From Paraphysomonas bandaiensis (lineage: Eukaryota; Protista; Chrysophyceae): a stretch of DNA of 64,000 nucleotides. How positions within the stretch are numbered: the first letter of the stretch is position 1; every line of letters begins with the position of its first letter. The stretch lies in contig CBFFRP010000380.1 of assembly GCA_965644295.1 (NCBI GenBank), positions 124,001 through 188,000 of the forward strand. Reading direction: 5' to 3'. Positions 2,471 to 49,898 of the stretch are shown piece by piece. Under the pieces are notes generated by a model. The model was not told where the DNA came from. It saw nothing but the letters and a program-made list of their open reading frames with translations, and made no database searches. Position numbers and translations under genes: made by a program.

Positions 2471-5400
2471 TCACTCACTAACTATACAAACTGGACAATC
2501 TAGCGTCCACCAAATAGAATTTCCCATTTCACCATCAGCAATGTCCAGTTCTCGGACAAAAGTATATATGAAATATCCACGACAGCGAGTAAAACAAACG
2601 CTTATTTCATGATGAAATGACGAGTTCCCACTTTCATCTTTCACTGGCGCCTCCAATACAGCTCTTGGCCTGCCGGTAACCACAAAATCAGTAGATTCCC
2701 TGTTGTCGTTGTTAGACACAATCACTACAAGAACTTCTACGCGCCGCTTGTCTTCTTCTATCATCAATCCTGAGCTGGGATCATTGGGGAGTAATTTGAC
2801 GTCCACTCTGAACCTATGAAATTGTCTCGCCTGCACATATATAGTCGTATCTCCTGTGGATGCAGGACTTTTTGAAAAGTAAGAATTGAACTCAAACGTT
2901 GGGAGCATCAGGCTATCGACAACTGCATCAGAGGTAGTTGTACAATGAAATCTACCCTTTCTACTTAGGACATTGCCACCTCCAATACTAGAATGATTCA
3001 TGCTCCAGTTGAGACATAAAGAGGACATAGCCTGACGATGAGCTTCTCGCTGACTTATGTCATTCGTCAGCGTAGCACACTGAAAGTAGGTGCGCAAATC
3101 GTCTACAGACACGAGGGCAATGATATTTACAGAGGAGTGGGCTGCCACTTCGATGTAGTGAGCATCTGCCTCCAAATCGCCCGAGTGCCCCCTCGGATAC
3201 ACGCACTGCCATTTCAGTTGAGCACTCCCGGTCTCGCTACCTTTCAACAGCGAGGAAGTGCTGATAGAAATCGAACAGGGCGATTGATTGGTAATCTGAA
3301 GTATTGTTATTGCGTCAGTAAATTAATACCAAACCAGTACCTCGACAGCATATCGTCTAATCTTGCTGCAGCATGAAACTTCTGTGCCCTTCAATGTCCC
3401 GCCCTCCTCCCTGCACCGCCCCTCCGATGACTTTCCAAGAGCTTCTTTCACAGCTGCCAGAGCATTGGCAGAAACGACGCTGTCTCTGTGAGGGATGAAA
3501 GGACATCGCGAAACAATTTCAAATCCCGATAGAGTGTGGGTCTGGTACTTGTTCAGGTCCATTAATGCATCGTCAAGAGGAACTATAGCAGATACGCGGA
3601 TGTCGGATGACAGTTCCACAGCTACATCCAATATTGACCTATCGAAAAATTCCAATTAGGTTAATACTTTAGAAACACTCTACGCCCTATTGCTCACCGT
3701 CGGACATATACGGTGTCAGAGCCAGAGCCGACGGGCTGGGAGGGTTCCATAGATTTCTCTGAATCACTAACACATTGTAACAAATATCGATCCATCCCCG
3801 GGAACTCTGAAAATAATAAAGAATAAAGAGCACGGATTATCAGAAATAAAGACAAATAGGTATATATAGAAGGCACCTGATATGTATTCCACATCAATCC
3901 GTAGATCGAATTCAGCCGACTCACCAGTGCTACCACAGCACATGAAGTTCGAGAATTCCAGCCCCAAAGCTATACGATCACGGGGGGCTAGCGGTAAATT
4001 TACTCGCGGTACATCCTCACTTTCATCACAACCAACCAGGCGCACCAAAATAGGAAAAGCAAGTTCAGCATCGTCACCGGAAGAATGTGTACGCTTGAAC
4101 ACAGAAGCAGGAAGCATGGAAGGGTCGGTCTTAAGTCCAGCAACTAAAACTTGAGTGAAAGGAAGCAAGGTATACACCGCCTTCGCTTTGGATGGGCTCA
4201 CACCAAATATTTCCGCGTTTCGCCAGGTGCACACAACAGTTATTCGCAGGTCAACAACCTAAACTATTGATAAACAAAAATCAAACGCATACAAAAGCAA
4301 CTGACCTTTAAAGATGCGGATAGATTATTTAGTCGTATCGTCTCCCGCCTGACCTCGTTGTCGTAAAGTTTCATTGCCAGGCTTTCGCACCCTGTCACCA
4401 CTGAATCTGTACAAAACAAATAACACAAAAAGATGATCGACAATGGTATGCGCACCAGCTACAATAGTAGCATTCCCAGCTCTATACTTCTCTGAGCCCA
4501 TATTCTCAAGATCGCCAACGCCGGACTGTTGCTGACCGAGATCCGGCCCCCAAGAGGCCGACAGAGATAGAGCGGCACTCTCAGGCACTACGCTTACCTC
4601 AGTGGTGCGATAGTTGTTAGCTGAAGCGTCAGAGTTGCCAGTGCTGCAGGATGTGGCTTCTTCCGGGTCCGTGTCAAAGTGTGCTGGTGGGGTTTTGCTA
4701 TGAGACTTAACTACACTCCATGGGTACTTCCAAGGAAGGGCAAGCTCGCGCGACAATAATGTCAGGCCTTTACCAGTAGCCGAGTCTACATAGCTGCAGT
4801 GTACTGCATTATATATGGAATACCTAATTCCTTTTATTTGCACTGGGCCGGTAGCACGTGGGCACACAGCCAGATGAGTGGAAAATTCCTTAGTTTTAGG
4901 AGGTATGACGACGGATTTCGCAGGTCGGCAGGAGTGCTGCGGACCATCAATAAGAAGGTGGACGTCGTGCAGATGCATTGGGACAGCCAAAGGATTGCAA
5001 AGGGTTGCCTCCACTATTGCAACGGTCCCTACAGACCACAAAAGTGAAATAGTGCTCGAACGCGACTTGTCTTTCCTGCGCTTGGCTTCGAAAGGATCAT
5101 AGAAAAGAGCAGAAGCAGTCTCGGCAACCATCGGAGCAGTGGCCCCAGAGGCAGCTACCGAGCCTCTAGGAATGATGTTGATCGGCGTATAGGCCTGATC
5201 CTCAGTAGCCGGTATCGGTCTGAGGCGGATAAGAAAGGGAAGGCCATCTAAAACCAAGGGAGTCGCGGGAGGGATTTCAGCACAAACAGAAGATAGAGCG
5301 CTAAGAGACTGGCTTTGGGAGTCCAGGGGCACACCCAAGCGGTAAGAGGGGTCTGGGATTGAAGAGGGTACATACAGTACAGTACGTGTAGTAGAGGCTG

Positions 5401-8216
5401 GGGGAGTAGATGGAGTGACATCTAAGGGCGCATGCGATGGCGAAGTAGGTTCAGTGACTAGAGAACAATGTAGAGCTGCTGGGTCTGAAACAGATCCGTT
5501 TTGCTTAGCAAGGGCAACTGCAGCAGCACTACCGTTTAAAGAGAACGGCGAATTGCTCGTTGATGATCCTACTCCGACATTGGAGCGAGGTCCGAGTTTC
5601 TTCTTCTTTTTTAGTACAAGATTTTGCACAAATGGCGATATTTTTGGAACATTAATATGACCACGAACGTTCTTGAGAGCCTCTGGATTGAACCTAGCAC
5701 CCCAATTACTATTGCTGTGATCGGAGTGCTCGGAATGAGAGTCATCTTGCGAGACTGTGTCCTGCTGTGAGTGGTCCATACCAGTCATAGAATTTAAAGT
5801 CGCCTGGCCATTGTTGACGTACGAGGAACTCCTACCAGACCTAGATATGTCATGATAAGACATATTTGAAGCAATTGCAGAAACAGAAATAGAGCGCGGA
5901 TGGTCCGGCTCCGGTGCATGAGGTGACGCGGTATTCACGCTGCCTTCCTCTAAACCCCTAGGAGATGATTTGCCTTCGCTACCCATCGTCGACTGACCGG
6001 AAAATGAAAACTTGTGTACTGTGCTTTGCAAATATTGTTGCGGGGCACTATTCTCCCGCCACCGCTGCGCTTTTGGATCTGTGTCCAGCGGCGATTGATA
6101 GGCAGATCCCTTCCCACTACTGTCTTTCATATCTTCTAGCAATGAACTAGACCCTATCCATAGCCTGCGATTGCGGTGTCGATTCTCTTCCATTTCTCCT
6201 ACCAGTCGTAGTAACGCCGCAAGGCACCTTTACACATCCCGATTACATATTACAACTAAATTGTCATGCAAATCACACCTAGCAGTTGCAGATGTATCCC
6301 CAAACTCCTTCGCGAAATGAGCACTGTGGGCAAGTAGCATGCGACGCATTCCAGCCCAACTCCTCTCTGGATTCACCGTGACTATATCCTGCTCTTCCTC
6401 TTCAGCGAGCTGTATTCCATACTGCTGACAGGCACATCTCACCTGAAAACGCAGTTGAAGGAAAAATGCAGAACTGTGTTTTCGAGCACAAAGTGGTACA
6501 AGCAAGCTCATGTGCAGGTTATTTTCATTGCAATTGACTTACCAGAGAGTGAGCCACAGACACGTTCTCTGAGTCCGCGCTTAGCAGGGCGGCAACGTAG
6601 AGAAGGAAGGCATACTTCCGTTTCATATTCATGCGTAAGCATGTGAACGCACCCTCGATGGTGCACTCTATCTGCTGGGGGAGGTTCAACCCAGGTACTG
6701 CTGCTGCTCTCAACACAAAATCCATCACCTTTTGTTGCCTTTCTGGAGAAGGGCTCAACTGCTCATGCATGCGTGCCAAGCGAAGGGAACACTCCACCTC
6801 AAGACCGCACAGCGCAATATTCCTGGAGTAGAGGGACATCGCCTCCACGCAGCGCTCCTCCGCCACTCGTACCACTCCCCCAGTTACAGATCCTACCCCC
6901 CCGCTAGATACAAGACTTCTTATCTCCCGTACCATGCCCAGTAGTTCTTCTGACGCCCCACTACCAAGTCGCAACATCGTCAACATAACCAACACAGACC
7001 CTTCAAGAGAGCTCGCGAGCCACATAGAGTCATTCTGGCTGCGACAATCTGATATGGCGGCACTGTAGTGTTCCCAAGCATCTTGAGGGGAGCACACTTG
7101 CATACACAAGTCTCCCATCCACTTCCGGATCCTACCAGGAAGACGTCGCCTGACTCGCCTGCTAGCTTCACTCCCCCCACTGTTGTCCTCCATTTCCTCA
7201 TATGTGGTGGTGAGCGGTAGCCACGGGGGCATCGGAAAAGGAGCAGTGGAGAAAGCAGAAGTGTTCGCGAGTTTAACTCTCAACTCCTCACATGTGGCTA
7301 TCCGTTCCTCAGCGTCCTGGAATAGTCGCACTGCTACATTTCCCATAATCTCCTTGGTGTGAACGTCTATCATGCTGCCACCCTCGCACTCTCCATCCGG
7401 TGGAAATATAACCATGGCGTAGGGGTCTCGGGCTGGGGAGGAAGGGGAATTATTGTCAGCAAAAGGCAGCTGGGGGGGAGGCCGAGGAGTGCCGCCATCA
7501 GACATGGATGCCACTGCCGCGAAGTAATTAAAAACGAAGTATCTCTTAAGTACAACATGAGGGTGGCGTCTACAGTGGAAAGATAAGATGTCGACAAGAG
7601 TAGCTGCATTGCATCACCTAGAATAGTAGTCCATATCTTCAATCAACCGTGATGAAGTCGACGAATCCAACTCGGGATAGTTGATCACACCAATAACAAC
7701 CAAAATTCGGCGACAACACTTAAACAAACAACCGTCACTACCTATGAAACATTGCTAGTGATTAAAAATATACCTGAAAGTTGTCTAAATCACTTGGACC
7801 ATTTGCGACGCGGTCATATCGAAGATACTCGAACAAAATATTCGCTCCACCAGATAGCCAGTTGAAATTTCTGTTAGGGAATAAGTGCAATTAGTATGAC
7901 TATATAGAGCATATCATCCACTTCTCCCCACATACTTGAACATAGAGTTCTGATTTTTCCATTCGCTTGGACGGTTTAAGTCAAACACTGGCAGATTCCT
8001 GTATCTCATATGAGCCACTAGGATCACTGTGAATATATGTATGAGACAATACCTGGTGCGTGATACGATCTCAAAGTGTTTATCATACATGCTATTGTCA
8101 CCAATAGGTACAACTAAGACCTGTATCCTCTGTTAGTATGTGTATGTGTATATATATATGCATACGTGTACCTTTATAGCACGAGCTTCATCAAAAGTTT
8201 GATTGAAAGATATCAT
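2471..8216 (-). CDS. TRAPPC9: TRAPP II complex subunit TRAPPC9/Trs120, multi-exon
   Basis: Exon 1 MISFNQTFDEARAIK then VLVVPIG. Conserved GRIRKWMGDLCMQVCSPQDAWEHYSAAISDCRSQNDSMWLASSLEG and MKRKYAFLLY, followed by the Ig-like region FYDPF...LCNPLAVPMHLHDVHL. ORFs 6525-7514, 6230-6511, 4325-6193, 3767-4234, 3323-3655 and 2471-3247 are consecutive exons. Confidence 0.85.
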
Positions 8217-31470: not shown

Positions 31471-33054
31471 TTAGGTCTGGTAAACTCGCTGACTTAACGG
31501 CCTCGCAAGGTCTGAAAGGGGCCCGTGGGTCGCCGCAGTAGCATTATTTACACACGAAGGCTTTGTCCGTACAGCGTCTACAGCTTTGGATACTATATTT
31601 ACAACGGCGTCTACATCAATGACTGTCCCTGAGGATGTACTTGTTCCGTCCTCGGCCTGGTACCGATAGTAGTGCATACCATAGTGTCGAGCTAAGTTTC
31701 CAAATCCCCTAATCGTGTAGAAACCTTGAGATGTGTCAGGAAAAAGTTCCACAAGTGCACAGCAATTCGGTTCACCGACAGCAGCGTGGAACATATTAGC
31801 CGTTCCAGCACCGTGCATTGTCAGAAGCACACCCGCACTGTGTGAAAGAGCGACTTGCTCTTTGAACGGCAGTCTCGCAAAACTTTGAACAGTCAGCCGC
31901 ACACCTTTGATGCGCTTTAGTGCAGTAACTAACGGATCAAGGTTGGCAATAACACGAGCACTGTTTGAGCTACCTTTACGGTGATTAATTTCCCTAGTCT
32001 CCAGGACCACATGCACCTCATCAATAGGGGGAGGCGGAAGAGAGTCTTGGCCATATCGATCCCGCCACATCTCTCGGAGATGCAAGGAAAATGACTGATA
32101 CAACGGTGAAGGGCCTCGAAAGGAACACGGATTGTCGTTGGACCAGTCCGCCCAGAACCATGGATATCCAGGGAAATATTGAAAGTATAGCTCTGAGAAG
32201 CAAACTTTCTTATCTCCATAGTCTTTCCCCTTTGCTACCTCGTTAAACCAGCTCTCAAAATATGCAGAAAAGGGTCCGTGTTCGTCCGGGCGGCCAGGAA
32301 TCATCAGCCGGTGGGGCGTGCCCCCTCCTGGTCCTCCAGCTCTTATCCCATCCATATTTATCAGTAGGGAATCTCGCCCCAATCGACCAGTCAAAACCAG
32401 CATACTCCAGACCATTATAACGTCATTCATGTAATGGCTTAGGTTAAAGCAGTCGTCGTTAGATAGAACGAAAGTTGGTCGCGTCTCCCACACGTCACAC
32501 TCACCAAGTGCGGGTACGTGCTTGTATCCAGGTGCAGGGCTGACTGAAGTGCTTCTTGTACCATGACTCTGTACAAACCCGGATGCAAACTCTCTGTGGT
32601 CATTAAGAACACGAGAAAGTGCAAAATCAACTGTAGCATTCGTGAGTCTACATAAGGTATTCGCTTTGTTGCTCGTTATACACTCGATTCCATCAGTCGG
32701 TTGTGATCTCACTTTATAGCGTTGCTTTATCCAGTAATTGAAAAAATTCCAGCCATAGCGCTGATTACATGACATCACTTTGTTGAACTGTATCAGCTCC
32801 TCACAGTTGTTGATCGTCCACATATCTCGTAATTTCTTCGGCATTGGACCCCAACGCTTCCCTATAACAGTGCCATACTTCTTCATTGTTGCCATGCACC
32901 AGTCACGACCCACTTGTCCTTTGATTAACTCAACTGTGGAGTACTTTTCTCGTATAGAAGCATCACATTGAATATATTCTCTAGTGTTTGAGGCCACAGG
33001 CATCATACACATGAATAACACCACCACAAACACCTCTACTGCACAATACATCAT
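31471..33054 (-). CDS. Glycosyltransferase family 61 (EOGT/DUF563-like), secretory pathway
   Basis: Signal peptide, FNLSHYMND, LPFKEQVALSHSAGVLLTMHGAGTAN, LVELFP, FGNLARHYGMHY; intronless. Confidence 0.85.
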   Translation of the reverse strand: MMYCAVEVFVVVLFMCMMPVASNTREYIQCDASIREKYSTVELIKGQVGRDWCMATMKKYGTVIGKRWGPMPKKLRDMWTINNCEELIQFNKVMSCNQRYGWNFFNYWIKQRYKVRSQPTDGIECITSNKANTLCRLTNATVDFALSRVLNDHREFASGFVQSHGTRSTSVSPAPGYKHVPALGECDVWETRPTFVLSNDDCFNLSHYMNDVIMVWSMLVLTGRLGRDSLLINMDGIRAGGPGGGTPHRLMIPGRPDEHGPFSAYFESWFNEVAKGKDYGDKKVCFSELYFQYFPGYPWFWADWSNDNPCSFRGPSPLYQSFSLHLREMWRDRYGQDSLPPPPIDEVHVVLETREINHRKGSSNSARVIANLDPLVTALKRIKGVRLTVQSFARLPFKEQVALSHSAGVLLTMHGAGTANMFHAAVGEPNCCALVELFPDTSQGFYTIRGFGNLARHYGMHYYRYQAEDGTSTSSGTVIDVDAVVNIVSKAVDAVRTKPSCVNNATAATHGPLSDLARPLSQRVYQT

Positions 33055-33612
33055 ACTGAGCTATCAGATCTATACACAGGGACTCTCACAGATAATTGTT
33101 ACTTGTTAAACTTTCTTTAATATCATGGAAGCACTCCCATGAGCTGCAATATCCTTTAACGCACTCTTGGCTGCTCTGTGTATAGTGCTTGTTTATTAGT
33201 CACATCATTAAATAGCATATATTCTATACTAAAATGGGGGAATATGTCAAAAATGGGAGAAAAAGGCCGAATATTATGATTTTAGGATCTGAAAACAGGA
33301 GTATTTAGTACAGTAATAATAAAACTCTGTTCATACTATGCTGCACTACTGCACTAACTCAAGAGCTCATCCTGCTGTATGGTGGATCTCATACAGCAGA
33401 GTACATATGGCTAAAGTAAGTAAGTTATACGCTATGTACATGAAGGATTGTATATGTACATATTCAAATACGAATCTCTCTGTAGTGAATAAGGACCGCC
33501 ATAAGATCAGATGATGATATATATACCCATCCAGTGGACACAACTCATACATACACTTACTATTAATAACTTCAGATAATTCCTATCCAGTGTGTTAATC
33601 TCTGCGGCTTGT

Positions 33613-36600
33613 ATGAAGGAGATGATGACAAGAGATCCCTTCCAGTCCAGTTCGTCTTCTAATAAGAGTATGGAACCTAAAAAGAGGGGAAGACCACCTA
33701 AATCTTTTTCACATTCATCTGATCAGATTCCTCCTCCATTGAGAAAGAAAACACGTCAGATATCTGGGTCGATGTTAACTGGTGCTGCTAGTCCGAGTAG
33801 AGGACAAGTAATGGGGAAGACGGGATACACAGATGTAAATAAGGTATATATATATACATAGTTACATATATATAGTTACATATATACATTCATATACCTG
33901 TACATATATGTAGACATGTACACATACATATATATAGACATATTCCTGTAGATACGTTACGAGATGTAGAGAAGTAGAAACTAATAAATGTGGTGAGCTG
34001 CTGGGCCTGATGTTCACTGTCATTCAGAGACTACTTGCAGAAGGGTGGCAAATAGATACTGCATGTAGTAAGTGGATAGGAAAGAAAGTCCGACGGTTTT
34101 TCGTTGGTCATGGAGCTGTGGACGGTACTGTTGTAGGATACATGCCCTCCGACTCTGCTGAAGGTATATACACCGTCTTTTCATGTAACTGTTGTCTTTT
34201 CTTGGTACACATACTATTTTTCCTATTGACATAAGTACTTATTCTCTGCCTAGGTCATCCTCTGTGGCACGTATCTCACGAGGACGAAGACAGTGAGGAT
34301 ATGAGCGAAAGCGAGTTGGAGCTTTGTAGGCATGTCGTGTATATTTTGTGTGTTATAGTTTAACAGCGATTCTCATGTTTGCAGTAAGCTGTATGATTCA
34401 GAAGCAAAGTGCTTGAGCAATGAAGAATTTCAACGACTACATGAAAAATGCGCGACTATTTCTGATAGATATCCTGACAGCAAGGTGTTGGCACACTTTG
34501 CTCTGCGCACAGGGGTTACATGTTCAAGAGTGGGCTCGTCATACCAGGCAGATTTGAGCAATCTATCTCCACATGAGGCATTACCCGACAATTCAGGTTC
34601 AGTGATGACAGTGTGCACAGAGAGTGATAGCTATGAGCCTGTACTTCATAAGGAGTACCTATCTCGAGCGCACGTGGCGGCTCTATTACCAGGCATGGTG
34701 GTGCAGGCGCGGCTCCCTTCTCCTCATTCTTTGCTTATTCCAGTTTGTCTTGTCGCTCATCTGGCAAATGGGAAAGTTGTGGTTTTTGACGGCTCCTCAC
34801 ATCACACCTTGCTCATGACCGAGTGTGTACCGCCGAGTGTCGACGAGCTTGACATAGACGGGGCGTGGATGAATTCCGGTGGACGCATGGATGATGCGGT
34901 GTTACGAGTGCAACGGACCGCTCAGCTGATACTATCTTTGCAGCTGTCTGGATCAATTCTAGAGCTACTCCTTTTTGCTTGGAAGGAACACAAGAGTGAT
35001 CTGGAGACGGGTTGGAGGACTCACCTGAGAAATGTCCTTTCTTTCAAACAATTACTTGGTTTTTACCACACCCTTTGCCCAGTCCTACTTAGAGATAAAA
35101 GTAAACAGGGATGGGAAAATCTTAGGCGTGTGTATCAATGTGCTGATGCAATACGTGGCACTGAAATATCACCGCCTTCATCAGTCAGTAACAACATGAT
35201 CATGGAAGGGGACTGGGGGTCGGAGGCCGAGGATGAGGACGTTTTCTACCCAAGTGGCCCTAGTTTTATTCTAGAAAACCCTTCCCACGCTTCTTTTCCA
35301 TCGTCCCCACGTTCAGTTAAGCGTAGAGGCAGGGGCAGGCGAGAAGTCGAGCAGATCGACCTCGAAACAGGAAAAGTCATCGCGATATACCCTTCCGGAG
35401 TTGCTGCGGCCGCAAAGATTGGCGGCTCTCAATCGTCTGTCTCTGCCTGCTGTAGGGGTAAAACCAAACAGTACGGTGGGTACAGATGGCGGTTTGTGGA
35501 ACGGGATTGTGAGGATCTTTCATCGGTAGGTCATATCAGTACTCAAGATACGACGCATAGCCTCTTTGCTAGTACCAGCGATTACGACTCCTGGCAGTCT
35601 GATAATTCTGATGATGACTTTCGGGAAGCGAGTAAAGTGCATGTGCGAGAGCAACATATCGTGAAGTATGACACTGAAACTGGAGAAACAATAGCAGTTT
35701 ACGCAACTGTAGTGGCTGCTGCTCTCGCGCTGGGTGAAATGCGGACATGTAAGTCCGAAACAGCTATTTCTTCTTGCTGTCGAGGCACACGAAGGGCCTA
35801 TGCTGGATATGGGTGGCGATTCGCAAAAAAACATGAACTTATCCATAATGGTCTGTCTACTCACGGACAGCGAGCTGATGCAGATAGCAACAGTTCGTCT
35901 CGTAGTGACGTTGAGAGTAATGCAGTCAGCGATGATGACGTTGAGAAAAAGTTGGATGTCGGTGGTATGACGCGTCCGAGAAAGCAAGGCCGTAAGGTGG
36001 TTCAGTGCGACTATGACACGGGAGCGGTGATTGCAGTCTATCCAAGTGGAAAGGCGGCTGCAAATGCAGTAGGGGGAAGACAGTCTTCAATATCCAGCTG
36101 CTGTACAGGTAGATTTAAGTCTCATCTTGGGTTCAGGTGGAGGTTTGTATCAATCACTGATAACAATTCGTCAGAGGCCACTTTGCTGCATGAACACGCC
36201 AAGAAAAGACCTGGTCGTCCCTCTCGAGGAAGAAAGAAAAAAGCTGCTAGACAGATGCCTGCTAAGCGTATGAAAGCGAGTAATCTCCGTGGTTCCATTA
36301 GTAGCAGGAAGGGACGTGCGGTTGAGCAATATGACTTGGAAACGGGTGAAACTGTTGCAATACACCCATCTGGGGTTGCAGCCGCTAATGCAATTAATGG
36401 CACGCAGTCTGTTATATCCGCCTGCTGTAGGGGAGTAAAAGAGGAGCACCGTGGGTTTGGGTGGAGATTTGCAGATGGGAATTCTGACCTGGCAGATGTG
36501 AGTATGGCTGATGACGACGGTTACAATGAAGCAAATAGTGAAGAATTTACAGTTTTAAAGGATGATAAATGCGAGCTTCATGTTGATGCGGCCAATCGAC

Positions 36601-36851
36601 AAGGCGTTCAAGTTCATGACTCCAGCGACGTGCATCAGAGTTCTAATTATAGTACAGGTAGTGGTAGTAGTATGAAGAGTAGCGTCGACTTGGGGACAGG
36701 TGCAAGAAATGAAGCAGACGTTATTAGTGACGAAAATTTCGAAAACTACAGTTCGAAAGGTAGCCTAGATAGTGATGGCTCAGAAGACTGTAGTATTATT
36801 AGCGGCCTTAGTAGTAGTGACGAAGAGAATGATGAATCGTTGTATATCTAA
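33613..36851 (+). CDS. Nuclear DNA/chromatin-binding protein: AT-hook, Tudor-like domain, ELM2-like motif and four NUMOD1/IENR1-like DNA-binding repeats
   Basis: KKRGRPPK; WIGKKVRRFFVGHGAVDGTVVGY..|HPLWHVSHEDEDSEDM; RVGSSYQADL; four repeats of V-x-Q-x-D-x-E-T-G-x-x-I-A-x-Y-P-S-x-x-A-A-A...ISxCCxG...GxxWRF at ~35340-35498, 35655-35822, 35991-36146 and 36315-36470. Confidence 0.8.
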
Positions 36852-37851
36852 AATATCATAGTGTAGTGCGAATAGAAGTTTGTGTGGGTTTTGTGCTTAG
36901 TTAACCGAGATGTGGTGGATAACCAAGATGTTACTATAGCTAGTTATGGTGAAATGGTGAAGGTGCTTTTACCAGAATAGTTACATACAACAGCGGCATT
37001 TCAGAGAATTTATTTTACATCTCTTCTGTTGATTTCTATCGTATGTATATGTGAATAATGTATTATTGATGTCTAGTATTGTTGTACTACTTCGAAAATC
37101 GTAAGTTGAAACTGCTATATCAATAATTATATAAAATTCGAAAACTTCAATATTATTTTCCCATTAGATATAAGATTCATTCATTATATGTTTCTCGAGA
37201 AGAAACTTGTAAGACTAAATGAGTACATATTGCTATATAGTTCTGTAGTAATTGTTGGTCGCCACTCTCTCAAATGTACTTTCATATCATTCCAGTTGAT
37301 TAATTGTGGACGCTGCAATATATACAGAGAATTTTAATCTCATATAGTGTAGAAGTGCTTTAATAAGCTGCGTAATATAATAGAAAAAATGTCCCCATAA
37401 TCATTGTAGACATCAAAGCCTGATCAGTATATGTGTATGTGTTTTTCCACTATGAATGAACCGGCCACTCCACATATCCTCCCCATTAGATATATAGGAA
37501 TACACATTGAGACAATGACGTGGCAAGTATCCTCTGTGTCTCTGTGTGTCTGTGTATCTCCCCATTTGGATGTGTTCATTCTAATTAGTTTATTATGAGT
37601 GATAAGGGACGACAGCTCCATTGTACTGCTGGATATACTAGCAATACATGTCTACTTCTAAGGTACTGATAGAGGTGTTGATAGCCTATCTGCATGATCT
37701 TCTACTAATGGATATGTAGCTGCATCTGTGATTGGGCTGGATATGCCAGTGTACCTTTACATACACATAACTCAACACAGTGCGTATCTCGTATCTGTGC
37801 TATGGATCTTACTGTAGCTAGATCCTCCATGCGACTGGACATATATGGCCA

Positions 37852-48511: not shown

Positions 48512-49348
48512 CTATACATCAACTACAGGTTGAGAATCATCGGAACAGTCACTATCTGTACTCATTGCATCATCATCACGATCATCAACATCATCCTGTG
48601 TACAAGAAGTATAGTTTCGATGCGCTGGGTGAATCACATTCCTGACAATATCTGCCCACGAGTAAACACTTCGACAAACACTGCACGTGCCTGTGGAGGG
48701 TATGATGAGGTCACTACTGCATGATCTGGCGGTACATACTAGATGTGACATTGTGTGGCAACTACAACATCGCCATACGCTTCCTTCATGCTTGTCACAC
48801 ATTGAGCATGAAATATCACAGTCTGTAGAACCAATGTGATCAGAATTCTGTTCGATATTTACAACGGACGTCAAGGAAGCTTTAAGTAGATGATTACTCC
48901 TTTTCTGCATCACCCAATCATATGAAACAGAGTCTATAAAATTCACTGTCAAGTCCAATTGTTTCCATAGATTGTTATCCAGCATGGACAAGAGTATATC
49001 TATCTTCCCCTTCCATCCTCTTGTCTTCCAACTTTTCATGCTATGATTTCGTATAATTCTACTATCATATGGATGTTGAAATTGCCATTCAAATTGTAAT
49101 GCAGTTATTTTATTAGGAAATCCTGATATAATAAGGATATAAGCCCATGGTCGGTGCCGTGCTGTACGTCGAGCTCCACCTGCCTTTAAATCACCATTGT
49201 GTTGTCTGATTCGACGTGATGGATGAGTTGTAAATCCTATATATGTACGAGAAGAATTAAGAGATTCTTCTGATTTTAATAGATAACAGTAATATGGCAT
49301 GAGTTCATCGAACTTAAGAGTGGAACAGTGATGTACAGCTCTCTCCAT
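48512..49348 (-). CDS. SLX1: Structure-specific endonuclease subunit SLX1 (GIY-YIG + C-terminal RING/PHD-like zinc finger)
   Basis: YCYLLKS...TYIGFTTHPSRRIRQHNG..GGARRT..RPW...GFPNKITALQFEW; CSMC..CCSCHTMSHLVC..CSVC. Probable start MERAVHH. Confidence 0.92.
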   Translation of the reverse strand: MERAVHHCSTLKFDELMPYYCYLLKSEESLNSSRTYIGFTTHPSRRIRQHNGDLKAGGARRTARHRPWAYILIISGFPNKITALQFEWQFQHPYDSRIIRNHSMKSWKTRGWKGKIDILLSMLDNNLWKQLDLTVNFIDSVSYDWVMQKRSNHLLKASLTSVVNIEQNSDHIGSTDCDISCSMCDKHEGSVWRCCSCHTMSHLVCTARSCSSDLIIPSTGTCSVCRSVYSWADIVRNVIHPAHRNYTSCTQDDVDDRDDDAMSTDSDCSDDSQPVVDV

Positions 49349-49898
49349 ATGCTGCTGTCTGTACATGTATACATATACTGTGTACATATATATACATACA
49401 CATATACAGCAGTACAGTAGCCTGTAGCCTGTATATATGATACAGCCGTCCATCTAACGACTATAAAATGCCATAGTTTACTATCCCACAGGATTTTTAT
49501 CATCTTCTACCGTCTAAAAACCCTGTTTTTTTTTGAAGTTTGTGATATTTCCAAACACAAAACAGGATATTTTCTACCATAAAACCCTCCTACTGTTGTG
49601 TATATCTTAACGCTATGATGATATACAGAGGTGTCCATAACTTAACACTCATAGCTAACTATATCACCCTAACTCTAACCATACACTCTATATTGCTCAT
49701 GTCATTTTGCTGAAAGGTGTCGCACTATTGACCTGCTCTTGTCGTCATCTTTCAGCACAATGCTGTCGATTAGATATATATATATGTATATATCCACCCC
49801 TCCATACAAACATACATACACACACACATATATATACATATATACATATATAGACATATATAGAGATAGTAATCACATTGAACACATACTTACTATCA

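Follow-up and report, generated by a model that had tools for sequence, protein, structure and literature searches.

We conclude that the four-exon gene at positions 33613-36851 (+) of the window, the 64,000-nucleotide stretch of the Paraphysomonas bandaiensis genome analyzed here (contig CBFFRP010000380.1, positions 124,001 to 188,000), is a nuclear gene that probably encodes a nuclease-free, multivalent chromatin-targeting protein, acting as a sequence-directed adaptor or transcription regulator. The gene is spliced, polyadenylated, and conserved, and its product combines four NUMOD1 modules with two Tudor-type barrels and a SANT-like domain and has no nuclease. The original prediction, made from the sequence alone, had described a spliced gene for a chromatin-type protein with four tandem NUMOD1 DNA-binding domains of the kind found in homing endonucleases.

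The four repeats of ~55 amino acids (aa) lie where they had been placed, at residues 466-520, 570-629, 683-737, and 791-845 of the encoded protein. The product is represented in full by P0001, a 969-residue open reading frame (ORF) from an MMETSP transcriptome that is marked "complete"; it was recovered by word-indexed protein search and was used for all whole-protein analyses. The repeats are 44 to 58% identical pairwise at the protein level, and no DNA-level repeat was detected among the four copies, so the internal duplications are old. Pfam assigns the repeats to NUMOD1 (PF07453; E 4.7e-12, 46.2 bits against a curated cutoff of 22.8) and to I-HmuI_NUMOD-like (PF22083; E 4.5e-9, 36.2 bits against a cutoff of 27). 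A profile built from the family repeats scores all four copies at 82 to 100 bits in a scan of the source genome. The basic patches that had been noted precede repeats 1, 3, and 4, respectively.

35337-35501 (+): NUMOD1 repeat 1, residues 466-520, with KRRGRGRR in front (Pfam; family profile, 99.7 bits; AlphaFold fold)
35649-35828 (+): NUMOD1 repeat 2, residues 570-629, lacking a basic patch, its turn lengthened by a 5-residue insertion (Pfam; 82.1 bits)
35988-36152 (+): NUMOD1 repeat 3, residues 683-737, with RPRKQGRK in front (Pfam; 95.0 bits)
36312-36476 (+): NUMOD1 repeat 4, residues 791-845, with SRKGR in front (Pfam; 95.3 bits)

The identification of the repeats as NUMOD1/IENR1 modules is borne out by structure as well as by profile. 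Repeat 1, the modeled copy, is predicted by AlphaFold with a predicted local distance difference test score (pLDDT) of 85 to 92 and shows the b-b-a-a-b topology of NUMOD1, in which the helix pair packs against a three-stranded sheet. The model matches the helix-turn-helix (HTH) domain of I-HmuI (1u3e_M) with Z 8.6, and Foldseek superimposes it on 1u3e with a root mean square deviation (rmsd) of 1.6 A over 53 residues. It also matches 8b6e_B, the Paulinella protein sCTP-23166, with Z 7.6 and an rmsd of 1.5 A over 51 of 52 residues at 29% identity. The tie to solved structures rests on Pfam and on fold comparison, because PDB searches by sequence profile gave no significant match; with the repeat profile, the best was I-HmuI at E 0.7. 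A putative recognition helix, S-x-I-S-x-C-C-x-G, is nearly identical in the four repeats and throughout the family. As had been anticipated, a Pfam scan found no HNH or GIY-YIG domain in either the 812-aa ORF of the window or P0001. Lacking a catalytic domain, the protein is not an endonuclease, although its repeats belong to a family of endonuclease DNA-binding modules.

Transcripts join the upstream exons to the long ORF at 34413-36851 (812 aa), a connection that had been proposed from the DNA. All three introns are absent from transcript contigs X1 (3160 nt) and X3 (1506 nt), which come from two different studies, and all three are retained in DNA contig X15; P0001 spans every exon and reaches 157 residues further N-terminal than the window ORF. 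These contigs, assembled from public runs, were aligned to window positions 33400-37200, and the intron joints, which carry 2-nt ambiguities, were resolved against P0001. The window exons, translated one by one and compared singly with P0001, agree with it in every exon except for P40L and N418S, and the translation of exon 1 supports the originally proposed start codon at 33613. The transcript extends at least from 33509 to 36997 and is organized as follows.

33509-33612 (+): 5' untranslated region (UTR), minimum extent (transcript contig X1 starts at 33509)
33613-33843 (+): exon 1, coding part, residues 1-77, ATG at 33613 (equal to P0001 1-77 except P40L; joint 33843/34028)
33844-34027 (+): intron 1, 184 nt, GT-AG (skipped in X1 and X3, kept in X15; splice dinucleotides checked)
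34028-34163 (+): exon 2, residues 78-122 plus the first base of codon 123 (transcript contigs; exon translation)
34164-34253 (+): intron 2, 90 nt, GT-AG (transcript contigs; splice dinucleotides)
34254-34329 (+): exon 3, residues 123-148, with split codons at both ends (transcript contigs; exon translation)
34330-34384 (+): intron 3, 55 nt, GC-AG, a minor splice class (joint in X1 and X3, with 2-nt ambiguity)
34385-36851 (+): exon 4, residues 148-969 plus the TAA stop (ORF; transcript contigs; exon translation)
36852-36997 (+): 3' UTR, minimum extent (transcript contigs end at 36965-36997)

Intron 3 is assigned to the GC-AG class because only a GC..AG placement restores the codon AGT, which is Ser148 of P0001. 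Apart from the two nonsynonymous differences between the window and P0001, at window positions 33731 (P40L) and 35194 (N418S), several silent or UTR differences from the window are common to X1, X3, and X15. The differences between window and transcripts are allelic or strain variation. Expression is documented by culture transcriptomes and by poly-A-selected marine metatranscriptomes, and the latter (X5-X9) contain pieces of exon 4 with no differences listed.

The N-terminal half of the protein consists of chromatin-type modules. In an AlphaFold model computed from a ten-member family alignment (A3), confidence is high for the first Tudor barrel, the middle module, and NUMOD1 repeat 1.

34079-34321 (+): Tudor 1 (PTM/DIR17-like), residues ~95-145, split by intron 2 (PF21743; AlphaFold barrel)
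34527-34580 (+): ELM2-like motif RVGSSYQADL..., residues 196-213 (Pfam ELM2, E 0.013-0.079, below cutoff)
34656-34838 (+): second Tudor/SH3-like beta-barrel, residues ~239-299 (AlphaFold pLDDT 80-96; TDRD3 Tudor match)
34839-35159 (+): helical domain with a SANT/Myb-like three-helix unit, residues ~300-406 (AlphaFold pLDDT ~85-94)

A Tudor-like domain had been recognized in the 5' exons. Its Pfam score falls short of the cutoff (PF21743; E 0.0011, 19.1 bits against 27.2, with 27.0 bits for a paralogue on contig C369), but the predicted structure upholds the assignment: the region is modeled as a five-stranded Tudor/SH3-like beta-barrel with a pLDDT of ~80 to 88, and Foldseek matches it to the Tudor domain of PHF1 (template modeling score of 0.77, rmsd 1.8 A over 55 residues) and to many Tudor and PWWP chains. 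The middle module, refolded alone (pLDDT 80.8, predicted template modeling score of 0.71), forms a long helix, a second barrel, and a helical domain. This second barrel, which had escaped the original prediction, matches the Tudor domain of TDRD3 with Z 7.3 and an rmsd of 1.4 A over 57 residues. The helical domain matches the SANT domain of CoREST at a middling level (Z 6.4, rmsd 1.8 A over 48 residues).

The motif RVGSSYQADL had been called ELM2-like. It is present as described, and its G and Q are invariant in the 9 to 10 family members compared, but the resemblance stays at the level of a motif: the ELM2 match reaches 14.3 to 16.9 bits against a cutoff of 21.7 and covers only positions 2-20 of the 53 in the model. 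Of nine family members scanned, three have a Pfam match to ELM2 at this motif (best E, 0.0011), all below threshold. By structure, the middle region matches the ELM2-SANT region of MTA1 with Z 6.4 to 7.8 and an rmsd of 3.6 to 4.3 A over 113 to 117 residues, with the barrel inserted, values that the tool itself places in the range of chance. With the larger model, the top multi-element matches are the MTA1 chains 4bkx_A (Z 7.8, 113 residues) and 7ao8_D (Z 7.5) and the MiDAC chain 9r4i_E (Z 6.6); MTA1 ELM2-SANT chains recur with the domain-only model at Z 6.4 to 6.6. A family profile of the middle domain retrieved no ELM2 or SANT chain from the PDB at E <= 10, and a feature search of the ESM Atlas with the N-terminal half gave no usable match. 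Because the sequence scores are below threshold, the Z values are in the chance range, and the profile has no match in the PDB, we treat "ELM2-SANT-like" as a lead and not as membership.

Between and beyond the folded modules lie flexible and charged segments. Acidic, serine-rich spacers had been reported between the repeats; this holds for linkers 1 and 2, which have a high Asp and Ser content, as does the C-terminal tail, but linker 3 is basic (15% K, 15% R). Two GRP cores with K/R flanks occur in the protein. The first is the AT-hook KKRGRPPK, which is present as predicted but scores just below the Pfam cutoff (PF02178).

33676-33699 (+): AT-hook 1 (KKRGRPPK), in exon 1 (Pfam AT_hook, E 0.0065, 16.6 bits against 17.4; GRP core with basic flanks)
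36201-36242 (+): AT-hook 2, or basic patch resembling a nuclear localization signal (NLS), KKRPGRPSRGRKKK, in linker 3 (GRP core by sequence; linker composition)
36483-36848 (+): acidic Ser-rich C-terminal tail, 122 residues, 848-969 (D 15%, E 9%, S 20%; no Pfam match)

The protein belongs to a family. When 1.84 billion cluster representatives were searched exhaustively with HMMER, 2980 proteins matched at E <= 1e-3, and 346 of them at E <= 1e-10. Word-indexed searches for homologues, whether with the ORF or with the alignment of the family, recovered nothing beyond the protein itself or a single known orthologue. Seven relatives (P0003, P0006, P0007, P0010, P0011, P0012, and P0047) align from the Tudor domain through the barrel and helical domain to the first NUMOD1, with the alignment of P0007 starting at the ELM2-like motif since its N-terminus is missing. 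They are 24 to 32% identical to P0001, retain the invariant G and Q of the motif and the conserved core positions, and carry one to three NUMOD1 copies each. The suggestion of a family is thus strengthened: at least seven proteins less than 50% identical keep the N-terminal module together with NUMOD1, and the source genome has a paralogue of the same layout. Other combinations are found among the relatives. P0055, from another MMETSP transcriptome, joins Tudor, RING, and NUMOD1, and P0076 has several Tudor/Agenet domains with NUMOD1. In Pfam tallies over the best 150 relatives, some of the WSD, DDT, PHD, and HMG matches come from Tudor-matched proteins without NUMOD1. In P0079 (954 aa), I-HmuI NUMOD-like repeats occur together with sigma-70 regions 2, 3, and 4, all complete.

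Within the source genome (62.6 Mb in 669 contigs, with at least seven silicon-transporter genes), the same type of NUMOD1 occurs at five places: the window gene and loci on contigs C369, C28, C68, and C210. The C369 paralogue (L001:4227-8806 [-], that is, G000:C369:82226-86805) has the same N-terminus of Tudor domain, RVGxxYQ motif, barrel, and helical domain, followed by ~8 NUMOD1 copies. Its N-terminal ORF lies at L001 7676-8806, and it is likely to contain introns, since its ORFs are broken by stops; one of these ORFs is P0073. Three of them (4227-5252, 5291-6133, and 6172-7014) show near identity along most of their length and start 881 bp apart, which suggests either recent tandem expansion or an assembly effect. 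C28 encodes a large protein (L002:7084-9969 [-]; G000:C28:69083-71968) with a WSD/WHIM match just below cutoff (23.4 bits), FYRC-like matches, and a single C-terminal NUMOD1 (92 bits with the family profile); its neighbor is a full-length Copia-type polyprotein ORF (L002:19-5013 [+]). C68 encodes a 175-aa protein with a basic N-terminus and a single NUMOD1 (L003:3691-4218 [+]) that scores 84.6 bits with the family profile and has no Pfam match, and the gene lies directly downstream of a long (ATGTATGT...)-type microsatellite. C210 holds a truncated copy of the C68 protein, 84% identical (L004:4006-4194 [-]).

Where the module came from can be approached through its relatives. Among the best 150, 27 carry GIY-YIG and 29 carry NUMOD4/HNH_3 (56/150 nuclease-linked), and an HNH homing endonuclease from Bacillus phage Mater shares 56% identity with repeat 3 across 48 aa. 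On these two grounds, the idea that NUMOD1 was captured from a mobile nuclease, which had been put forward from the sequence, is a well-founded inference. Mater was the single significant phage in a tblastn search of phage genomes, and a scan of viral contigs with repeat 3 found no relative. All NUMOD1 clusters that the array retrieved from the ESM Atlas, at scores <0.8, were from phages, bacteria, or giant viruses, and none was eukaryotic. The NUMOD1 consensus of Tudor-linked and own-genome copies is about the same as that of nuclease-linked copies, including the helix-2 C-C-x-G. We considered C-C-x-G as a eukaryote-specific signature and rejected it, as it occurs in 44% of GIY-YIG-linked copies, including P0024, a GIY-YIG protein with five such repeats that is encoded on a densely packed, phage-like contig. 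In a FastTree tree of 344 labeled domain copies, 10 label changes suffice for those that are Tudor-linked or from the source genome, compared to ~42 when labels are shuffled, and these copies form clades of 14, 8, 5, and 4; the domain is short, and relatedness alone inflates such clustering. The pattern fits a small number of captures, after which the module would have been duplicated and shuffled.

How might such a protein work? Binding of the NUMOD1 array to double-stranded DNA (dsDNA) via helix 2 is inferred here because the Paulinella DB-sCTPs, which have the same fold, bind dsDNA without a nuclease. Each module would insert helix 2 into the major groove and cover ~6 to 8 bp, as do the homologous domains of I-HmuI and I-TevI. 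The basic arms before repeats 1, 3, and 4 and the two AT-hooks may add contacts to the minor groove and backbone. Strung together like beads by flexible acidic linkers, the modules could jointly recognize a site that is long and composite or made of reiterated elements. This DNA address would be coupled to histone marks or tails, and possibly to a modifying complex or a deacetylase, by the two Tudor-type barrels and the SANT-like domain, so that the protein would serve as a sequence-directed chromatin adaptor or transcription regulator, for which we favor a repressive, corepressor-like role. The module may have been captured from a GIY-YIG or HNH endonuclease of phage or giant-virus type and then duplicated and shuffled among host chromatin proteins. 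Three points weigh against this account. The resemblance to ELM2/SANT is below threshold by sequence and middling by structure (Z 6.4-7.8, possibly chance). The four repeats of the window protein fall outside the pure Tudor-linked clades, singly among nuclease-linked copies. Finally, because the recognition helix is near-invariant, generic binding or binding to a uniform motif, to a reiterated short site, or largely to the backbone fits at least as well as reading of a long heterogeneous site.

More tentatively, we propose that NUMOD1 may constitute a hitherto unrecognized, lineage-specific class of domains for sequence-specific DNA binding, at work in the nuclear machinery of chromatin and transcription in the host lineage and perhaps in other protists. 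Captured from endonucleases of phages or giant viruses, it would have been shuffled onto Tudor, ELM2/SANT-like, WHIM/WSD, and RING scaffolds, in parallel to AP2, with the array length (1, 3, 4, or ~8) tuning the length of the DNA address.

Other explanations have to be weighed against that of a chromatin-targeting adaptor or regulator. One of them is a special case of it, in which the RVGxxYQ motif and the helical domain constitute a divergent ELM2-SANT module that binds and activates a class I histone deacetylase (HDAC), as in MTA1, MIER, CoREST, and MiDAC, and the NUMOD1 array supplies the DNA address. The invariant G and Q of the motif, the ELM2 matches in a third of the family members scanned, and the recurrence of MTA1 ELM2-SANT/HDAC1 chains as top multi-element fold matches, also with the domain-only model, all point in this direction. 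Yet every ELM2 score is below the curated cutoff and spans ~19 of 53 model positions, a PDB search with the family profile comes up with no ELM2 or SANT chain, the Z values lie inside the stated chance range of the tool, and a Tudor-like barrel sits where MTA1 has its dimerization helices; we consider recruitment of an HDAC in this manner unlikely. In the genome, HDAC loci L009 and L014 look class II-like, and the other HDAC matches are interrupted by stops and are probably spliced. It is very improbable, in our judgment, that the array instead defends the genome by occupying the sites of NUMOD-bearing mobile nucleases while the Tudor and SANT-like parts bring repressive chromatin. A reader domain joined to a DNA address is what a silencer would need, and ORFs combining NUMOD4, HNH_3, and AP2 (~136 to 186 aa) occur in at least 26 places in the same genome; however, these multicopy HNH elements bind DNA via NUMOD4 and AP2, not NUMOD1, and no NUMOD1-linked nuclease was found in the genome, where the sole GIY-YIG matches are the SLX1 gene of the window and one other locus, on C77.

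Two further explanations would remove the protein from host chromatin altogether. Diatom plastid import needs a hydrophobic signal peptide, and the N-terminus of the window protein is hydrophilic (MKEMMTRDPFQSSSSS...), without a hydrophobic signal peptide; moreover, the modules that it carries (Tudor barrels, AT-hooks, and a SANT-like domain) belong to nuclear chromatin, and the basic KKRPGRPSRGRKKK patch is NLS-like. These features argue so strongly against import of the array into a plastid or mitochondrion, where it would bind organellar DNA as a nucleoid protein, that we find this explanation barely credible, even though repeat 1 is close to the 8b6e structure and the sole experimentally studied nuclease-free eukaryotic proteins of NUMOD1-like type, the Paulinella DB-sCTPs, are organelle-targeted and bind organelle DNA fragments (PMC10319021). 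The notion that the locus is the decaying, functionless remnant of a viral or mobile-element insertion, derived from a homing endonuclease or a giant-virus gene, draws on the overwhelmingly phage, bacterial, and giant-virus affiliation of the nearest NUMOD1 structural and sequence clusters and on the wealth of mobile elements in the genome, including Copia and the NUMOD4-HNH-AP2 ORFs. It is largely refuted, and we give it almost no weight. The 969-codon frame is intact, its three introns are correctly spliced, and it is expressed in cultures and in the sea; conservation is domain specific in orthologues <35% identical; no DNA-level repeat, terminal repeat, or nuclease lies nearby; and the base composition of the gene is that of the surrounding window. 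An unexpressed viral insertion or a set of exons that are never spliced together, either of which would have undone the original prediction, is refuted by the spliced transcripts, by expression, and by the ordinary host neighbors, a GT61 gene upstream and SLX1 downstream.

If the protein is a chromatin-targeting adaptor or regulator, it differs in notable ways from the systems that it most resembles. The NUMOD1/IENR1 homing endonucleases (PF07453 and PF22083; I-HmuI, 1U3E; I-TevI, 1I3J) are of the same family and have the same b-b-a-a-b fold, and tandem NUMOD1 arrays with a near-identical consensus occur in nuclease-linked relatives too. In contrast, the window protein lacks a nuclease, is encoded by a spliced nuclear gene, is fused to Tudor, AT-hook, and SANT-like parts, and belongs to a host gene family. 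Closer in this respect are the DB-sCTPs of Paulinella chromatophora (sCTP-23166, 8B6E), which are likewise eukaryotic, nucleus encoded, and nuclease free and have the same HTH fold, but which are short, single-domain, organelle-targeted proteins of a rhizarian amoeba, whereas the window protein is a 969-aa chromatin-type protein with a four-copy array. The fold of sCTP-23166 is that of the HTH domains of I-HmuI and I-TevI, and binding of helix 2 in the major groove of dsDNA is known for all three; the I-HmuI domain makes seven base contacts over eight base pairs, and standalone Paulinella DB-sCTPs bind dsDNA in electrophoretic mobility shift assays, pull-downs, and biolayer interferometry (PMC10319021). 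Beyond Paulinella, occurrences of the domain are known in bacteria and viruses, within proteins that also contain other domains and are typically endonucleases (PMC10319021).

The chromatin-type half has its own counterparts. ELM2-SANT scaffolds (MTA1, MIER, CoREST, and MiDAC; 4BKX, 7AO8, and 9R4I) likewise start with RVGxxYQ and have a SANT-like three-helix unit downstream, but the window protein differs in having a beta-barrel between motif and helices and in its subthreshold sequence scores. PTM/DIR17-like Tudor proteins (PF21743), chromatin proteins of the DDT/WSD type, provide the best family match for the N-terminal Tudor domain; several Tudor-matched relatives carry WSD and DDT, and the C28 protein joins WSD with NUMOD1. 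Unlike PTM/DIR17-type proteins, the window protein has no DDT or PHD domain, and its Tudor score is the subthreshold one given above. AP2/ERF and ApiAP2 factors derive from HNH-AP2 endonucleases. They follow the same logic, in which the DNA-binding module of an endonuclease becomes a host regulator, often in tandem, and their presumed source type is present in the genome of the window as the NUMOD4-HNH_3-AP2 ORFs. The AP2 fold differs (a three-stranded sheet and a helix), and the role of transcription factor is experimentally established for AP2 and proposed for the window protein.

The architecture and its family appear to be undescribed. A literature search found no paper describing this architecture or connecting NUMOD1 with diatoms or chromatin proteins, so the architecture is not, by that search, an already described family. 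A plant "ClNUM1" paper was considered as a precedent and set aside, as it concerns NUMOD3 and is unrelated. Domestication of DNA-binding domains from mobile elements is already known, however, and automated databases already tag such proteins with NUMOD1; among precedents, the standalone NUMOD1-like proteins of Paulinella come closest, and AP2 offers the nearest analogy. Diatoms rank among the major primary producers, and their DNA-binding regulators are only partly catalogued, with most chromatin-targeting mechanisms unknown. If our reading is correct, eukaryotic chromatin proteins have a new class of DNA-reading domain, and this would be a second, independent case, after AP2, in which the DNA-binding module of a homing endonuclease became a host regulator. 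Should the modules prove sequence specific, small tandem units with flexible linkers would be of interest as programmable DNA readers. The candidates that the family offers are the window gene, the C369 paralogue, and the C28 WHIM-type protein.

The neighborhood of the gene includes several further features. A 527-aa ORF with a Glyco_transf_61 match (GT61; window 31471-33054 [-]) is divergent from the NUMOD1 gene, and the two would share a promoter region in the ~450-bp spacer that separates this ORF from the transcript start (33509 or earlier). Some 12 kb downstream, an intronless 313-aa ORF (48512-49453 [-]) matches GIY-YIG (55 bits) and the SLX1 C-terminal zinc finger. It was considered as a nuclease partner of the NUMOD1 gene and rejected, being the SLX1 repair/structure-specific endonuclease subunit and unrelated. 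Elsewhere in the genome, an example of the NUMOD4-HNH_3-AP2 ORFs (168 aa, L008:1632-2138 [+]; G000:C510:15631-16137) adjoins an ORF with integrase (rve) and chromodomain matches (254-1267 [-] in L008). It is of the HNH-AP2 endonuclease type that is thought to be the source of AP2 transcription factors and that is here present in multiple copies.

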